Source: Haliotis cracherodii (Eukaryota). Taken from it: 64,000 bases of DNA. Position 1 is the first letter of the stretch. Every line of letters begins with the position of its first letter. The notes below the pieces were generated by a model. The model ran no database searches, was not told where the DNA came from, and saw only the letters and a program-made list of their open reading frames with translations. This document shows, in pieces, positions 42,397 to 60,829 of the stretch. The position numbers were made by a program, and so were the translations under genes. The stretch spans positions 29,512,001-29,576,000 of the forward strand of contig NW_027266286.1 of the NCBI RefSeq assembly GCF_022045235.1, written 5' to 3'.

Positions 42397-42493
42397 GTAT
42401 GTATGTTTCTGTAATCATTTATTTAGAATATTGTTTGTCCTTGTTTTATCAGTTACATCCCTGTTTTGGGGTGGTTGGCTTTGACTTATGTCT

Positions 42494-45400
42494 GGGGAAC
42501 TGGTTGGGGAGAAGAACAAGCTGGTTGGGAGAGAGGAGCAAGCTGGTGGGGGAGGCGAACAAGCTGGTTGGGGGAAGGGGAACAAGCTGGGTGGGGGGAA
42601 GGGGAACAAGCTGGTTGGGGGAAGGGGAACAAGCTGGTGGGGGGAAGGGGAACAAGCTGGTGGGGGGAAGGGGAACAGGCTGGTTGGGGGAAGGGGAACA
42701 AGCTGGTTGGGGGAGAGGAACAAGCTGGTTGGGGGAGAGGAACAAGCTGGTTGGGGGAAGGGGAACAAGCTGGTTGGGGGAAGGGGAACAAGCTGGTGGG
42801 GGTAAGGGGAACAAGCTGGTTGGGGGAGAGGAACAAGCTGGTTGGGGGAGGCGAACAAGCTGGTTGGGGGAGAGGAACAAGCTGGTTGGGGAGAAGAACA
42901 AGCTGGTTGGGGGAAGGGGAACAAGCTGGTTGGGGGAAGGGGAACAAGCTGGTTGGGGGAAGGGGAACAGGCTGGTTGGGGGAGAGGAACAAGCTGGTGG
43001 GGGGAAGGGGAACAAGCTGGTGGGGGGAAGGGGAACAAGCTGGTTGGGGGAAGGGGAACAAGCTGGTTGGGGGAGAGGAACAAGCTGGTTGGGGGAGAGG
43101 AACAAGCTGGTTGGGGGAAGGGGAACAAGCTGGTTGGGGGAAGGGGAACAAGCTGGTGGGGGTAAGGGGAACAAGCTGGTTGGGGGAGAGGAACAAGCTG
43201 GTTGGGGGAGGCGAACAAGCTGGTTGGGGGAGAGGAACAAGCTGGTTGGGGAGAAGAACAAGCTGGTTGGGGGAAGGGGAACAAGCTGGTTGGGGGAAGG
43301 GGAACAAGCTGGTTGGGGGAAGGGGAACAAGCTGGTTGGGGGAAGGGGAACAAGCTGGTGGGGGTAAGGGGAACAAGCTGGTTGGGGGAGAGGAACAAGC
43401 TGGCGGGGGGAAGGGGAACAAGCTGGTTGGGGGAGAGGAACAAGCTGGTTGGGGAAGGGGAACAAGCTGGTTGGGGAAGGGGAACAAGCTGGTGGGGGGA
43501 GAGGAACAAGCTGTTTGGGGAGAAGAACAAGCTGGTGGGGGGAAGGGGAACAAGCTGGGTGGGGAGAGAGGAGCAAGCTGGTGGGGGGAGGCGAACAAGC
43601 TGGTTGGGCGAGAGGAACAAGCTGGTTGGGGGAGGCGAACAAACTGGTTGGGGGAGAGGAATAAGCTGGTGGGGGGAAGGGGAACAAGCTGGTTGGGGGA
43701 AGGGGAACAAGCTGGTTGGGGGAGAGGAACAAGCTGGTTGGGGGAGAGGAACAAGCTGGTGGGGGGAGAGGAACAAGCTGGTTGGGGGAGAGGAACAAGC
43801 TGGTTGGGGGAGAGGAACAAGCTGGTTGGGGGAGAAGAGCAAGCTGGTTGGGGGAAGGGGAACAAGCTGGTTGGGGGAAGGGGAACAGGCTGGTTGGGGG
43901 GAAGGGGAACAAGCTGGATGGGGGGAGAGGAACAAGCTGGTTGGGGGAGTGGAACAAGCTGGTTGGGGGAGAGGAACAAGCTGGTTGGGGGAGAAGAGCA
44001 AGCTGGTGGGGGGAAGGGGAACAAGCTGGTTGGGGGAAGGGGAACAAGCTGGTTGGGGGGAAGGGGAACAAGCTGGTTGGGGGGAAGGGGAACAAGCTGG
44101 TTGGGGGAAGGGGAACAAGCTGGTTGGGGGAAGGGGAACAAGCTGGTTGGGGGAAGGGGAACAAGCTGGTTGGGGGGAAGGGGAACAAGCTGGTTGGGGG
44201 AAGGGGAACAAGCTGGTTGGGGGAAGGGGAACAAGCTGGTTGGGGGGAAGGGGAACAAGCTGGTTGGGGGGAAGGGGAACAAGCTGGTTGGGGGGAAGGG
44301 GAACAAGCTGGTTGGGGGAAGGGGAACAAGCTGGTTGGGGGAAGGGGAACAAGCTGGTTGGGGGGAAGGGGAACAAGCTGGTTGGGGGAAGGGGAACAGG
44401 CTGGGTGGGGGGAAGGGGAACAAGCTGGTTGGGGGAAGGGGAACAAGCTGGGTGGGGGGAAGGGGAACAAGCTGGTTGGGGGAAGGGGAACAAGCTGGTT
44501 GGGGGAGAAGAGCAAGCTGGTTGGGGGAAGGGGAACAAGCTGGTTGGGGGAAGGGGAACAGGCTGGGTGGGGGGAAGGGGAACAAGCTGGTTGGGGGAGA
44601 AGAGCAAGCTGGTTGGGGGAAGGGGAACAAGCTGGTTGGGGGAAGGGGAACAGGCTGGGTGGGGGGAAGGGGAACAGGCTGGTTGGGGGGAAGGGGAACA
44701 GGCTGGTTGGGGGAAGGGGAACAAGCTGGTTGGGGGGAAGGGGAACAAGCTGGTTGGGGGAAGGGGAATGAGCTGGTTGGGGGGAAGGGGAACAAGCTGG
44801 GTGGGGGAAGGGGAACAAGCTGGTGGGGGAAAGGGAACAAGCTGGTTGGGGGGAAGGGGAACAGGCTGGTTGGGGGGAAGGGGAACAGGCTGGTTGGGGG
44901 GAAGGGGAACAGGCTGGTTGGGGGAAGGGGAACAAGCTGGTTGGGGGGAAGGGGAACAGGCTGGTTGGGGGAAGGGGAATGAGCTGGTTGGGGGGAAGGG
45001 GAACAAGCTGGGTGGGGGAAGGGGAACAAGCTGGTGGGGGAAGGGGAACAGGCTGGGTGGGGGGAAGGGGAACAAGCTGGTTGGGGGAAGGGGAACAAGC
45101 TGGTTGGGGGGAAGGGGAACAGGCTGGTTGGGGGGAAGGGGAACAGGCTGGTTGGGGGGAAGGGGAACAGGCTGGTTGGGGGAAGGGGAACAAGCTGGTT
45201 GGGGGAAGGGGAACAGGCTGGTTGGGGGAAGGGGAACAAGCTGGGTGGGGGAAGGGGAACAAGCTGGTGGGGGAAGGGGAACAGGCTGGTTGGGGGGAAG
45301 GGGAATGAGCTGGTTGGGGGAAGGGGAACAAGCTGGTTGGGGGAAGGGGAACAAGCTGGGTGGGGGAAGGGGAACAAGCTGGTGGGGGAAGGGGAACAAG

Positions 45401-46470
45401 CTGGTTGGGGGGAAGGGGAACAGGCTGGTTGGGGGGAAGGGGAACAGGCTGGTTGGGGGGAAGGGGAATGAGCTGGTTGGGGGAAGGGGAACAAGCTGGT
45501 TGGGGGGAAGGGGAACAAGCTGGTTGGGGGAAGGGGAACAGGCTGGGTGGGGGGAAGGGGAACAAGCTGGTTGGGGGAAGGGGAACAAGCTGGGTGGGGG
45601 GAAGGGGAACAAGCTGGTTGGGGGAAGGGGAACAAGCTGGTTGGGGGAGAAGAGCAAGCTGGTTGGGGGAAGGGGAACAAGCTGGTTGGGGGAAGGGGAA
45701 CAGGCTGGGTGGGGGGAAGGGGAACAAGCTGGTTGGGGGAGAAGAGCAAGCTGGTTGGGGGAAGGGGAACAAGCTGGTTGGGGAAGGGGAACAAGCTGGT
45801 TGGGGGAGAAGAGCAAGCTGGTTGGGGGGAAGGGGAACAAGCTGGTTGGGGGAAGGGGAACAGGCTGGGTGGGGGGAAGGGGAACAAGCTGGTTGGGGGA
45901 AGGGGAACAAGCTGGTTGGGGGGAAGGGGAACAAGCTGGTTGGGGGAAGGGGAACAGGCTGGTTGGGGGGAAGGGGAACAGGCTGGTTGGGGGGAAGGGG
46001 AACAGGCTGGTTGGGGGAAGGGGAACAAGCTGGTTGGGGGGAAGGGGAACAAGCTGGTTGGGGGAAGGGGAATGAGCTGGTTGGGGGGAAGGGGAACAAG
46101 CTGGGTGGGGGAAGGGGAACAAGCTGGTGGGGGAAAGGGAACAAGCTGGTTGGGGGGAAGGGGAACAGGCTGGTTGGGGGGAAGGGGAACAGGCTGGTTG
46201 GGGGGAAGGGGAACAGGCTGGTTGGGGGAAGGGGAATGAGCTGGTTGGGGGGAAGGGGAACAAGCTGGGTGGGGGAAGGGGAACAAGCTGGTGGGGGAAA
46301 GGGAACAAGCTGGTTGGGGGGAAGGGGAACAGGCTGGTTGGGGGGAAGGGGAACAGGCTGGTTGGGGGAAGGGGAATGAGCTGGTTGGGGGAAGGGGAAC
46401 AAGCTGGTTGGGGGGAAGGGGAACAAGCTGGTTGGGGGAAGGGGAACAAGTTGGTTGGGGGAAGAAGCTT
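42494..46470 (+). repeat. G-rich minisatellite, ~22-24-bp unit GGGGAACAAGCTGGTTGGGGGAA, ~4 kb, in AMD1 intron 6
   Basis: Direct periodicity; it explains all the long overlapping ORFs here. Confidence 0.97.
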
Positions 46471-47211
46471 GGCGTGAGGTAGAATCTGGGCTGGGTAAGA
46501 AGAATCAAAATAACACACCTGGTTTATCAGGGAGAGGCTTGTCAAAGACATACAGAATAAGTGGGAACAGAAAAAGTGAGAAAAGCAATTTTCGAATTCT
46601 CTGTTTATCTGAAACTGTTTTGTGAAATGTGGCAGGATTTTTAACAATGTTATAGTGATTTCACGGGGATAAGGCCATTGTTCAGAGAACTGCTGAAGCT
46701 ATGAATGGTATTTGAGGCAGGGAAACTATTTCTGACTATATGTTCGCAAGCGTGATTACCAGACTTGTGATCTGGATTTCTAAATCTTTTCCACATTCCT
46801 GATTTGTTAGTCAGTGGATCCGTGTCCCAAATGAAAAAAGTTGATGCCTATTAATCCTTTAAGTTTTGTAAAATGAACTCTATGGTGTTATTGGGAGGGT
46901 CCATGAAATAAATACATTAACACTTGACATGAGAAAAACAAACTATGAGGAGTTACTGATTATCTGCCCCAGTGAATGAATGGTGTAAGCCCATGCCTAT
47001 GGCCTACATTAGTTTTCGAGTAGGTTATTCTGTGTATTTCTCTGTCCTTATACCAGTCTTCAAAATTATGCTGAAAATAATGGGGACCTTGTCATAATCC
47101 TAATGTTAAATATCCCTGTGTTACAGGTTTTCAGGCACTTAAGAAACATTTGTAGTTTCTCTCTCATCACATGAACAGCTGTAAAACATCTCACTCACTT
47201 ATTATAGAAAA

Positions 47212-50700: not shown

Positions 50701-50865
50701 TAATAAATAATGGTGATTGTCGGTCACACGTAACAGATGTTGTGGACAATACATACAAATAATGTACCACCATTTCCATATATGATGATAAGATTTATTA
50801 TTTGTCATATTTGCCACTGTCAGGGTTGTAGAAAATAGCAACCATGTATACATGTAGGTACTAAG

Positions 50866-52528
50866 GCCATGCCTGTTTCTGCCCCTTCTGTGTCAAATAG
50901 GGAGGTACCATGTCTGTCTCAGTCCCCCTCTGTGTCAAATAGGGAGGTACCGTGTGTGTTTCAGCCCCCTCTGTGTCAAATAGGGAGGTATGATGTGTTT
51001 CAGTCCCCCTTTGTCAAATAGGGAGGTACCATGTGTGTTTCAGCCCCCTCTGTGTCAAATAGGGAGGTACCATGTTTGTTTCAGTCCCCCTTTGTCAAAT
51101 AGGGAGGTACCATGTGTGTTTCAGCCCTCCTGTGTCAAATAGGGAGGTACCATGTGTGTTTCAGTCCCCCTCTATGTCAAATAGGGAGGTCACATGTGTG
51201 TTTCAGCCCCCTCTGTGTCAAATAGGGAGGTACCATGTGTGTTTCAGACCCCCTTTGTCAAATAGGGAGGTACCGTGTGTGTTTCAGCCCCCTCTGTGTC
51301 AAATAGGGAGGTACCCTGTGTGTTTCAGTCCCCCTTTGTCAAATAGGGAGGTACCATGTGTGTTTCAGCCCTCCTGTGTCAAATAGGGAGGTACCATGTG
51401 TGTTTCAGTCCCCCTCTATGTCAAATAGGGAGGTCACATGTGTGTTTCAGCCCCCCTCTTTGTCAAATAGGGAGGTATGATGTGTTTCAGTCCCCCTTTG
51501 TCAAATAGGGAGGTACCATGTGTGTTTCAGCCCCCTCTGTGTCAAATAGGGAGGTACCATGTTTGTTTCAGTCCCCCTTTGTCAAATAGGGAGGTACCAT
51601 GTGTGTTTCAGCCCTCCTGTGTCAAATAGGGAGGTACCATGTGTGTTTCAGTCCCCCTCTATGTCAAATAGGGAGGTCACATGTGTGTTTCAGCCCCCTC
51701 TGTGTCAAATAGGGAGGTACCATGTGTGTTTCAGACCCCCTTTGTCAAATAGGGAGGTACCGTGTGTGTTTCAGCCCCCTCTGTGTCAAATAGGGAGGTA
51801 CCCTGTGTGTTTCAGTCCCCCTTTGTCAAATAGGGAGGTACCATGTGTGTTTCAGCCCCCTCTGTGTCAAATAGGGAGGTACCATGTGTGTTTCAGCCCC
51901 CTCTGTGTCAAATAGGGAGATACCATGTGTGTTTCAGTCCCCATTTGTCAAATAGGCAGGTACCATGTGTGTTTCAGCCCCCTCTGTGTCAAATAGGTAG
52001 GTACCATGTGTGTTTCAGACCCCCTTTGTCAAATAGGCAGGTACCATGTGTGTTTCAGCCCCCTTTGTGTCAAATAGGCAGGTACCATGTGTGTTTCAGC
52101 CCCCTTTGTGTCAAATAGGGAGGTACCATGTCTGTCTCAGTCCCCCTCTTTGTCAAATAGGGAGGTATGATGTGTTTCAGTCCCTCTTTGTCAAATAGGT
52201 AGGTACCATGTGTGTTTCAGCCCCTCTGTGTCAAATAGGGAGGTACCATGTGTGTTTCAGACCCCCTTTGTCAAATAGGGAGGTGCCATGCCTGTTTCAG
52301 TCCCCCTCTGTCAAATAGGGAGGTACCCTGTGTGTTTCAGTCCCCCTTTGTCAAATAGGGAGGTGCCATGCCTGTTTCAGTCCCCCTTTGTCAAATAGGG
52401 AGGTACCCTGTGTGTTTCAGTCCCCCTTTGTGTCAAATAGGCAGGTACCATGTCTGTCTCAGTCCCCCTCTGTGTCAAATAGGCAGGTACCATGTGTGTT
52501 TCAGTCCCCCTGTGTCAAATAGGAAGGT
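50866..52528. repeat. Minisatellite, ~40-42-bp unit GTCAAATAGGGAGGTACCATGTGTGTTTCAGCCCCCTCTGT, ~41 copies
   Basis: Direct periodicity; 487-bp higher-order duplication (51072 vs 51559). Confidence 0.96.
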
Positions 52529-52645
52529 GCTTGATCAAGACACAATGAATCACATTCCCCACCACCCCCTTTAAAGAAGCTGTCTCCGCACTTCACATGG
52601 AATGTGACGACAATATCAATATCTATGTAATAAACGCTATAAATA

Positions 52646-59432: not shown

Positions 59433-59752
59433 AGACTCAATATAATAATAAGTAATGGGCTTATTGTGAATAAAATATTATAATGTCTCTCTTGAGATAC
59501 TCATTTTCAAAATGACCCAAGTCATCATTGTCTTTGCTCTGTGTGTGGAAACATCATTAGCAAGGTCATAGGTTAGGCTAGGATAAATAACTCAAATCTA
59601 TAAAGTTGGAAAATGTTAAAATTCATAGAATTAAAGGTTTTTTTACAACACAAAACCTTTAACGGATGTTGACAAATATAAACTGTTTGTTTTGATGCGC
59701 CACACAATGATGAGGAAGCCTGTGTAACTTGCTGTGCTGTGTTGTGTTGCAG

Positions 59753-59890
59753 GCCTCCCTTGCCCGGAACTCCCACCGAGACCTGGAGAAGAAGGAGCAG
59801 ATGAAGGGCTACTTAGTCCAGGACCATCAGTACTGCCGCTTCAAGAACTACAATCTCACCTACTCCTTCTTCTCCCGCCCTGTCATTTAG
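59753..59890 (+). CDS. AMD1: AMD1 exon 12 coding part: ASLARNSHRDLEKKEQMKGYLVQDHQYCRFKNYNLTYSFFSRPVI*
   Basis: Acceptor tgttgcag; the G.....Q...F..YN.....F pattern of the AdoMetDC C-terminus; TAG at 59888-59890. Confidence 0.92.
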   Translation, partial: ASLARNSHRDLEKKEQMKGYLVQDHQYCRFKNYNLTYSFFSRPVI

Positions 59891-60139
59891 GAGAGAACGT
59901 GCAGGGGTCCCACCAGGCGCAGCGTTGTTGCTGATGCTGCACCTGGAACCTTGGTTTGTGTCTGCAAACCCACGGGACCTGACTGCACACGTCGTAGTTT
60001 CCTTCCCTTCATAGACTTTTGCCTCTCTATTGCTTTTGTACATATTGTGTTCGTTGTGCGTGTGTTTGTATGGAACTCTCGAAAGAACAGAAAGAAGCAC
60101 AAGATTTTGTGCGGGTACATCACCCGTACACCCAGATAA
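59891..60139 (+). other. 82-codon in-frame open tail after the AMD1 stop (candidate readthrough extension)
   Basis: No in-frame stop until TAA at 60137-60139. The ORF-track entry 59951..60139 is in the AMD1 frame. Translation is not demonstrated. Confidence 0.5.
59899..59988 (+). promoter_or_regulatory. Predicted three-way-junction RNA structure 8 nt after the stop codon
   Basis: Hand pairing: GTGCAG/CTGCAC, GGGTCCC/GGGACCT, CCAGGCGCAGCGTT/GATGCTGCACCTGG and GGTTTG/CAAACC. Confidence 0.6.
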
Positions 60140-60353
60140 AGTTTGCATGCGGATTCTGACTGAGCTAATCCAGGTCACCGCGTGATCATGCATGCATGCA
60201 TGCGCTAATCGTTCTCCGGGACGATGCAAGGCAGTCAGCAGTGTTTGTACCTGCCTCATGCCCCAACACATACGTGTAGACTCTCACAGCACTTACTCAG
60301 GAGACCTGGTCAGAGGTGGCATTGGAGAGGGGTTTTTTTTATTAAAAAGTGCA

Positions 60354-60359
60354 AATAAA
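60354..60359 (+). promoter_or_regulatory. Candidate AMD1 polyadenylation signal AATAAA
   Basis: First AATAAA I found after the stop and tail (ATTAAA also at 60341); usage unknown. Confidence 0.3.
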
Positions 60360-60829
60360 TGGAGGTTCATCCCCAAACTGCATAGATTTCCGTTATGGTT
60401 ACAGTAGATTACATAGCATGATACAAAAATCATGAAACATGATTCAATATATATATTCTTCAAAATTTTGTTAATCCAACAATTTATCAATTCTGAATTT
60501 TATAAAAGTTACTGTAAGTAGCAAAATTTTACATGCAATTCTGAATTCTGTTTTCTTATATTTAACTACTAAGTAAAGTAGTTTTTGGAAAAACTTGTTT
60601 CCACAGGCGTAGTGATTGCATGGCACACATCAGTGATAAAACTGTTCCTAATACACAACATTATTCCTCCTGTCCAGGTCTCCCAAGAGTACAAGCGCTC
60701 TCTGTTCTTCCGAGGGTGTCATCTCACCTCTGTGTGCTTGGTGTAGGGTTGTATTGAAAACTTGGAATGTTGCTTCTGTGATGGAATACAGTGAGACCCT
60801 GCTAATTCGGAAACCGTGCCTTTTCCACA

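Follow-up and report, generated by a model that had tools for sequence, protein, structure and literature searches.

The C-tail of AMD1, the gene for S-adenosylmethionine decarboxylase (AdoMetDC), is the textbook example of a cellular device in which stop codon readthrough is followed by ribosome stalling. Both steps have been shown experimentally in vertebrates; readthrough at the first stop codon of human AMD1 amounts to approximately 2%, and the last 21 codons of the human tail suffice for pausing. According to a structural paper of 2026, the C-tail is universally conserved across vertebrates (PMC13025110; structure PDB 9Q7Q). Stalling at the second stop codon of the human tail, which comprises 127 residues, requires a clamp of K117, R121, and F124 together with an arginine hook, R125; F111, L112, Q113, V114, H120, Q122, and H127 make further contacts, and the contacts as a whole span the region from 17 residues before the stop codon to the last residue (PMC13025110). 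Other eukaryotic peptides that arrest termination include MAGDIS from the AMD1 upstream open reading frame (uORF), uORF2 of human cytomegalovirus (hCMV) gp48, and XBP1u (PMC13025110), and C-terminal hydrophobic degrons mitigate readthrough via the BAG6 pathway (bioRxiv 10.1101/2022.07.20.500724; PMC10364623). A full-text literature search, outside of which the original 2018 Nature paper lay, yielded no report of an AMD1 tail in molluscs or any other invertebrate. Here, we describe a candidate for such a tail in the black abalone Haliotis cracherodii. The DNA analyzed is a 64,000-nucleotide stretch of contig NW_027266286.1 (assembly GCF_022045235.1, positions 29,512,001 to 29,576,000, forward strand), hereafter called the window, and all coordinates are given relative to its first nucleotide. 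It contains the last coding exon of AMD1, whose reading frame continues open downstream of the annotated stop codon. From the comparison of sequences, a readthrough tail of the kind known only from vertebrates is probably present in invertebrates as well, with a different peptide.

The last exon was identical (100%) to residues 284 to 328 of the 328-amino-acid protein P0037, which is annotated as S-adenosylmethionine decarboxylase proenzyme-like of H. cracherodii, and in the public AMD1 annotation the protein stops at the TAG codon at 59888 to 59890 (stop 1). A preliminary description of the window had reported that this TAG is followed by 82 open codons in the AMD1 frame and then by TAA (stop 2); translation of 59753 to 60145 confirmed both the coordinates and the peptide (Table 1). 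The 3' region that holds the tail was present as a single copy in a search of the species' own 1.18-Gb genome, and a second copy was not found.

Taken by itself, the open frame of the window is mildly unusual but not compelling, and a chance open reading frame (ORF) was the favored explanation before comparison with other species. Dinucleotide shuffles of 59891 to 60330 resulted in a probability of 0.033 for at least 82 open codons, and shuffles of the tail itself in a probability of 0.024. In the non-repeat parts of the window, at least 82 open codons followed 1.0% of the stop codons on the plus strand and 1.7% of those on the minus strand. Tandem-repeat blocks had been masked for this empirical control, because the repeats inflate ORF statistics in the window. 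The figure of roughly 2% in the preliminary description was therefore a fair one. It should be noted that the tail has few stop triplets, whichever frame is read (5 in 247 positions), and that, calculated from its own off-frame stop density, the chance of an open tail rises to approximately 13%. These values, 1 to 3% for the window alone and about 13% given the low stop-triplet content, are what speaks for a functionless frame that stayed open by chance in a structured, GC-richer 3' untranslated region (3' UTR).

To obtain orthologous tails, the 45-residue last exon was used in a HMMER search against 1.84 billion representative proteins, which led to short ORF fragments on unannotated contigs. 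Metagenome contigs were then scanned with peptide patterns taken from the AMD1 last exon only, and seven loci, L002 to L008, were recovered. Since the last exon alone served for retrieval, there was no selection on the tail. The loci were grouped by the best match of their last exon to named proteins. L002 is vetigastropod-like, with a last exon 76% identical to that of Haliotis. L003 and L004 derive from heterobranch gastropods (approximately 80% identity to Aplysia or Plakobranchus; for the whole protein of L004, with L004:3-992 as the full-length query, 82% identity to Aplysia), and L005 and L008 derive from heterodont bivalves (78 to 82% to Mya or Ruditapes). L006 and L007 are lophotrochozoans in which the AMD1 C terminus reads ...PPAAPPH, as in the annelid Owenia. 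Another contig match, L009, was rejected as AT-rich bacterial sequence that is not AMD1. Several of the ORF fragments found at the protein level extend beyond the AMD1 C terminus, for example the Mytilus-like P0004; such fragments were used as secondary, protein-level support only.

Readthrough predicts that the whole stretch between stop 1 and stop 2 is kept open, and this was the case in all of the species. The AMD1 frame remained open after stop 1 for 87, 216, 175, 143, 154, 168, and 140 codons in L002 to L008, respectively. Including Haliotis, not a single in-frame stop was present among the 1,165 codons of the eight tails (82 to 216 codons each), whereas 275 stops in 5,825 codons (4.7%) were counted when these stretches were read in the five other frames. 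For L003, L004, L005, and L008, the probability of an open frame, as calculated from their own off-frame stop density, was approximately 1e-5 to 1e-7. Multiplication over one locus per clade yielded a joint chance of about 5e-13.

The two stop codons that enclose the tail were also conserved. Stop 1 is TAG in six species and TGA in the remaining two (L006 and L007), never TAA, and the next base is always G. Of the eight species, seven have TAA as stop 2. The sense codon immediately before stop 2 is AGA in six species and AAA in two, while the other arginine codons of the adjacent peptide vary freely. This uniformity of the last codon and of TAA suggests a constraint on the P-site tRNA or on the codon at the proposed stall site. 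When the window was compared with its nearest relative, L002, the tails were 78% identical and differed by one indel, which is 15 nt long and preserves the frame; beyond stop 2, the two sequences could not be aligned (44% identity). In more distant pairs, the tails are unalignable upstream of a terminal block, yet they are open.

From approximately 24 residues before stop 2 onward, the peptide is conserved. A gap-free alignment of the eight species (alignment A2) covers the last 35 residues. Invariant residues occupy alternate positions, F-24, W-22, S-20, K-18, R-16, and K-14, counted from stop 2, and thus form the motif F-x-W-x-S-x-K-x-R-x-K. In all eight species a basic residue is found at -4 and at -1, and the tryptophan lies exactly 22 residues before stop 2, as it also does in P0004. 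Net charge over the final 22 residues ranges from +8 to +11, with runs rich in lysine and arginine. Selection on this block was evaluated by Nei-Gojobori counts for the last 25 codons in four independent species pairs. In total, there were 47.2 synonymous and 27.8 nonsynonymous differences (pS, 0.74; pN, 0.12), and the resulting pN/pS ratio was 0.16 in the AMD1 frame, whereas reading the same nucleotides in the two shifted frames gave 1.34 and 2.21. When the window was compared with L002 over the final 50 codons of the tail, dN/dS was 0.05, against 0.31 for the AMD1 last exon, and the differences at codon positions 1, 2, and 3 numbered 2, 4, and 20. The tail end is almost certainly translated and under selection. 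No Pfam family was matched in any of the eight tails.

The preliminary description had interpreted the tail as a readthrough module and had named, as the test in related molluscs, a conserved stop at the end of AMD1, tails free of in-frame stops, indels that keep the frame, and a bias toward synonymous change. All four features were observed, and the module interpretation is supported by comparison on the seven loci retrieved with the last exon. The comparative data refute the explanation by chance: a frame open in eight of eight species, a motif at a fixed spacing, and the low pN/pS ratio leave it with practically no credit.

The conservation might instead belong to an independent gene or small ORF in the 3' UTR, or to a gene on the opposite strand. 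A 152-amino-acid antisense ORF (59813 to 60271, minus strand) covers the AMD1 stop codon and the tail, and the GC content around the tail is approximately 50% compared with approximately 35% in the AT-rich surroundings. The minus-strand ORF was rejected as a gene, as its frame is closed in L002 to L008; the minus-strand frames contain 1 to 5 stops each in L002 and 2 to 14 in the other loci. Its presence in the window is therefore explained by the scarcity of stop triplets in the Haliotis tail. An independent ORF on the plus strand would have to start without ATG, which is missing from the tails of Haliotis and L002. Only in the AMD1 frame do synonymous changes predominate, so that the substitution pattern contradicts any such gene, and the region is single copy and without a Pfam match. 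We consider an independent gene to be very improbable.

From the missing ATG in Haliotis and L002, it follows that translation enters the tail from upstream. The two mRNA-derived loci showed that the tail lies behind stop 1 in the mature message. On the L004 contig, a complete AMD1 ORF (330 amino acids) is followed without interruption by TAG, a tail of 175 codons, stop 2, and a poly(A) signal, and in L003 the last two exons are joined and continue into the tail. A different route into the tail would be an alternative 3' splice site at TAG|G (59890|59891), which would produce an isoform that lacks the last 45 residues of AdoMetDC and ends with the tail. The sequence before 59891 is pyrimidine rich and ends in TAG followed by G, TAG-G is shared by six of the eight species, and the upstream intron has phase 0, so the spliced product would be in frame. 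The pyrimidine richness, for its part, is accounted for by the codons of the conserved AMD1 end ...F-S/T-R-P-V/I-I/L. In addition, L006 and L007 have TGA-G at stop 1 and yet possess a contiguous in-frame tail with the motif, and in L003 and L004 the last exon, stop codon, and tail are seen unspliced. The motif was present in none of the 35 named AdoMetDC proteins matched (mostly from molluscs, with a few from other phyla, and with annotated isoforms included). Among all 145 proteins collected, only the Mytilus-like run-through ORFs P0004 and P0018 contained it. Entry by splicing is, in our view, quite improbable.

The sequence directly downstream of stop 1 resembles a known type of readthrough signal. 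In structure-stimulated readthrough, as at the gag-pol junction of murine leukaemia virus, UAG-G is followed by a spacer of approximately 8 nt and a downstream structure, and in plant tombusvirids readthrough is stimulated by long-range RNA pairings. Similarly, the AMD1 loci combine UAG or UGA plus G with a purine-rich spacer of 6 to 9 nt (six of eight loci) and a stable predicted helix. The 3' arm lies 75 to 300 nt away, which makes the pairing a long-range one. In the window, the helix (59899-59911/59974-59988) closes a three-way junction and was part of the minimum-energy folds of 116, 120, and 252 nt, with a pair probability of 0.92 to 0.96 and z scores of -4.1 to -4.9. Its 3' arm ends 149 nt before stop 2 in the window and in L002.

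The same two arms were identified in L002, L003, and L004, where they enclose inserts of approximately 90 to 300 nt, whereas L005 and L008 have a different arm pair (10 and 8 bp) at homologous positions. L006 is predicted to form a 13-bp helix that starts 22 nt after stop 1, and L007 a long-range helix of approximately 22 bp that starts 12 nt after it; in the other six loci the start is 7 to 10 nt after the stop codon. When whole tails were folded, the helix belonged to the minimum-energy structure in seven loci (pair probability, 0.85 to 0.99), and in L002 it was within 1 kcal/mol of the minimum-energy fold. The insert is free to change in length and sequence between species while its frame stays open. 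Between the window and L002 it is approximately 45% identical and contains the 15-nt indel, and in L003 to L008 it measures approximately 250 to 300 nt. A model with only a local hairpin after stop 1 was rejected, since folds of 120 nt gave z scores near 0 for L003 to L008; long-range pairing explains this result. The arms differ by one double change from C-G to U-A, brought about by two nonsynonymous substitutions, and by one change from U-A to a U-G wobble. The few variable pairs make for thin covariation support. The first 24 nt past stop 1 are identical between the window and L002, and the first 17 nt are identical between L005 and L008, with coding sequences that are 74 to 76% identical. 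The proposal of the preliminary description that the tail is combined with an RNA structure thus held up, with a conserved helix about 8 nt past stop 1 and one compensatory change. Entry through a splice site leaves a helix at this classic spacing from the stop codon unexplained. Unlike the viral signals, the helix belongs to a cellular gene, lies 12 to 22 nt past the stop in L007 and L006, and is a prediction without a demonstrated pseudoknot. A search of 59700 to 60450 against Rfam matched no family; two sub-threshold microRNA-like matches, on the minus strand inside the coding sequence, were taken as chance, among them mir-577 at 59782 to 59877 with 30 bits against a gathering score of 100.

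Nearly all named mollusc AdoMetDC proteins end in the tetrapeptide R-P-V/I-I/L right before the stop codon (59876 to 59887 in the window). It may be part of the readthrough context, through the last two codons and the P-site tRNA, or a functional protein end.

Programmed stop codon readthrough into a C-terminal arrest or regulatory peptide is, in our judgment, a reasonably probable account of Haliotis AMD1; entry of ribosomes by readthrough, stalling at stop 2, and a regulatory effect are what we infer from sequence and from the vertebrate analogy. Most ribosomes would terminate at UAG (59888) and release the AdoMetDC proenzyme of 328 amino acids. A minority would read through, probably aided by the UAG-G context, the purine-rich 8-nt spacer, and the long-range helix, and would translate 82 more codons. 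The first part of the extension would be required only to remain open and in frame. Its last 24 residues would form a conserved, strongly basic peptide whose distance to stop 2 is fixed, and this peptide, most likely situated in the exit tunnel and at the peptidyl-transferase center, would hinder termination at UAA (60137), as proposed by analogy to the vertebrate C-tail. In Haliotis, the hydrophobic stretch of the tail may also mark the product for degradation. By arrest or by degradation, readthrough events would lower further AdoMetDC output from the same mRNA.

Several points weigh against this account. To our knowledge, other stop contexts are leakier than UAG-G and UGA-G. The clamp and hook residues of vertebrates are missing in the eight species of alignment A2, so that an arrest function is proposed from a similar architecture. 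For human AMD1, the model of queueing and stalling is itself disputed, and degradation by a hydrophobic degron has been favored instead. Finally, the basic cluster could equally be a localization signal, and TAG|G, at the end of a pyrimidine-rich run, could act as a 3' splice site.

The localization signal leads to another alternative, in which readthrough produces a functional, stable AdoMetDC isoform whose basic C terminus is a targeting signal and no ribosome is arrested. Such a signal could be nuclear or nucleolar, by virtue of the lysine and arginine cluster, or it could direct the protein to a membrane as a tail anchor composed of the hydrophobic stretch and positive charges. The net charge of +8 to +11 with its basic runs suits this idea, as does a Kyte-Doolittle mean of more than 2 over 19 residues upstream of them in the window, L002, L005, and L008, and purifying selection on the peptide would fit any peptide function. 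The hydrophobic stretch, however, is weak or absent in L003, L004, and L007. Over the 25 residues before W-22, the Kyte-Doolittle mean was 2.1 in the window, 2.0 in L002, 2.2 in L005, and 1.5 in L008, whereas it was 0.45, 0.99, 1.2, and 0.30 in L003, L004, L006, and L007, respectively. A transmembrane-grade hydrophobic segment no more than approximately 30 to 50 residues from the C terminus, such as a tail anchor would need in every member, was not found throughout the eight loci. The hydrophobic stretch noted in the preliminary description is therefore strong in Haliotis without being universal, the tail-anchor explanation is disfavored, and any degron aspect is lineage specific at best. The tails match no Pfam domain. 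Moreover, a targeting signal does not require the fixed distance from the tryptophan to the stop codon; 22 residues without indels in gastropods, bivalves, and the third group fit an action at the active site of the ribosome. The alternating invariant residues, AGA or AAA as the last codon, and TAA as stop 2 likewise point to the termination step. A targeting isoform is therefore possible but unlikely.

The mollusc tail resembles the vertebrate C-tail in several respects. The tail lies in the same gene, directly after the AMD1 stop codon, and is a long stop-free extension (127 codons in human and 82 to 216 here). Amino acid conservation is concentrated in the last 21 to 25 codons by stop 2, and the human 21-codon pausing segment and contact span are similar in scale to the mollusc block. 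Basic residues lie near the C terminus, with hydrophobic segments upstream of them in some of the species analyzed here. An open and unconstrained spacer with a constrained terminal peptide is thus the pattern that has been described for the vertebrate AMD1 tail. In contrast, the mollusc peptide is a different one and does not match in the register counted from the stop codon. None of the species in A2 has K, R, F, and R at -11, -7, -4, and -3; the Haliotis residues at these positions are I, Y, R, and T, and the only loose likeness is a basic residue at -4 and often at -3. Further differences are the widely varying length of the mollusc tails and the long-range RNA helix past stop 1. Unlike the experimentally established steps in vertebrates, readthrough and stalling in molluscs are deduced from sequence. 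All PDB chains of at least 20 residues, among which the nascent chain of 9Q7Q was not confirmed to be included, were searched with phmmer (tail) and hmmsearch (A2) at E values up to 10, and no match was obtained. The preliminary description had called the module "homologous or convergent" to that of vertebrates, a wording that stands; K117, R121, F124, and R125 have no counterparts in register. It had also given the human tail as ending in RPH; of these residues, Arg125 as the third-last and His127 as the last are confirmed (PMC13025110).

The mollusc block has features in common with MAGDIS, gp48 uORF2, and XBP1u: the conserved nascent peptide is short and lies at a constant distance from the codon at which stalling is proposed, and there is no consensus across these families. 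The mollusc block is longer (24 residues) and far more basic than they are, and it would be reached only after readthrough. In Haliotis, L002, L005, and L008, the extension is strongly hydrophobic over a stretch near its end, which recalls the degrons of the BAG6 pathway. This stretch does not occur in all lineages, whereas the basic 24-residue block does, and a generic degron needs neither fixed spacing nor invariant residues.

The chances appear to us about even that the tail is not a vertebrate invention but either a bilaterian-ancestral feature whose arrest peptide was replaced so far that it is no longer recognizable or one that evolved twice in the same gene, and that a new lophotrochozoan arrest peptide and a helix together act as a counter. 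If this is true, F-x-W-x-S-x-K-x-R-x-K, located 14 to 24 residues from the stop codon, with basic residues at -4 and -1, would constitute a new eukaryotic termination-arrest peptide of lophotrochozoans. It would be another arrest peptide with the same task, unrelated to the vertebrate one, and would lend itself to structural comparison with PDB 9Q7Q. The long-range helix would tune readthrough, peptide and helix would jointly count AdoMetDC synthesis, and the locus would offer a cellular example of a long-range RNA helix beside a leaky stop codon. Readthrough would then have policed polyamine synthesis for more than half a billion years or would have arisen twice for this purpose. Mollusc AMD1 annotations would be missing a translated and selected segment.

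Table 1. Features of the AMD1 3' end in the window
Feature	Coordinates	Strand	Basis
AMD1/AdoMetDC last coding exon, 45 codons, C terminus ...FFSRPVI	59753..59887	+	translation
Stop 1, TAG, annotated AMD1 stop, proposed to be leaky; next base G	59888..59890	+	translation, 8-species comparison
In-frame tail ORF, 82 sense codons, no ATG	59891..60136	+	translation; open homologues in L002-L008
Purine-rich 8-nt spacer, GAGAGAAC, between stop 1 and helix	59891..59898	+	fold, L002 comparison
Predicted closing helix, 5' arm, GTGCAG + GGTCCC	59899..59911	+	folding, conservation
Variable insert within helix, two hairpins in window	59912..59973	+	comparison with L002
Predicted closing helix, 3' arm, GGGACC TGA CTGCAC	59974..59988	+	folding, conservation
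Hydrophobic stretch, tail residues 38-56, Kyte-Doolittle mean 2.33 over 19 residues	60002..60058	+	
Conserved C-terminal block, last 24 codons, net charge +8	60065..60136	+	ungapped alignment A2, pN/pS
Stop 2, TAA, proposed stall site; AGA codon just before	60137..60139	+	translation
Likely polyadenylation signals, ~200 nt past stop 2: ATTAAA 60341, AATAAA 60354	60341..60359	+	pattern scan

Some of the ORF fragments at the protein level have public calls that cross the AMD1 stop codon, namely, P0004, P0018, P0006, P0014, P0017, and P0019, all of them ORFs on mollusc-like Logan/ENA contigs. P0004, which has Q at the place of stop 1, can be aligned over its last 42 residues, end to end and without gaps, with the last 42 of the Haliotis tail. 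P0006, P0014, and P0017 show a conserved W eight to nine residues past the AMD1 stop, in addition to an excess of W. In P0014 and P0017, the distance from the motif W to the end equals 22 residues if the later W is read as TGA. We suspect that these run-through fragments were produced by prokaryotic gene callers that applied alternative genetic codes (TAG as Q and TGA as W) to eukaryotic DNA.

In the fold of the whole 3' UTR, a hairpin of 8 to 9 bp was predicted just 5' of stop 2 (60108 to 60130). It may not be conserved, as several synonymous differences of L002 fall inside it. In the genomic contig of L008 (L008:820-951 and upstream), the last two coding exons of AMD1 form a single exon, in which ...TIFANKE continues directly into SKAKD...; an intron is present at this position in Haliotis, L002, L005, L006, and L007. 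The window also harbors two long tandem-repeat blocks, at 42427 to 46622 and 50839 to 52571, within or upstream of the AMD1 gene region. In both, all three plus-strand frames lack stop codons over hundreds of codons; the repeat unit of one is rich in G, W, E, and K, and that of the other is PLCQIGRYHVCFSP-like.

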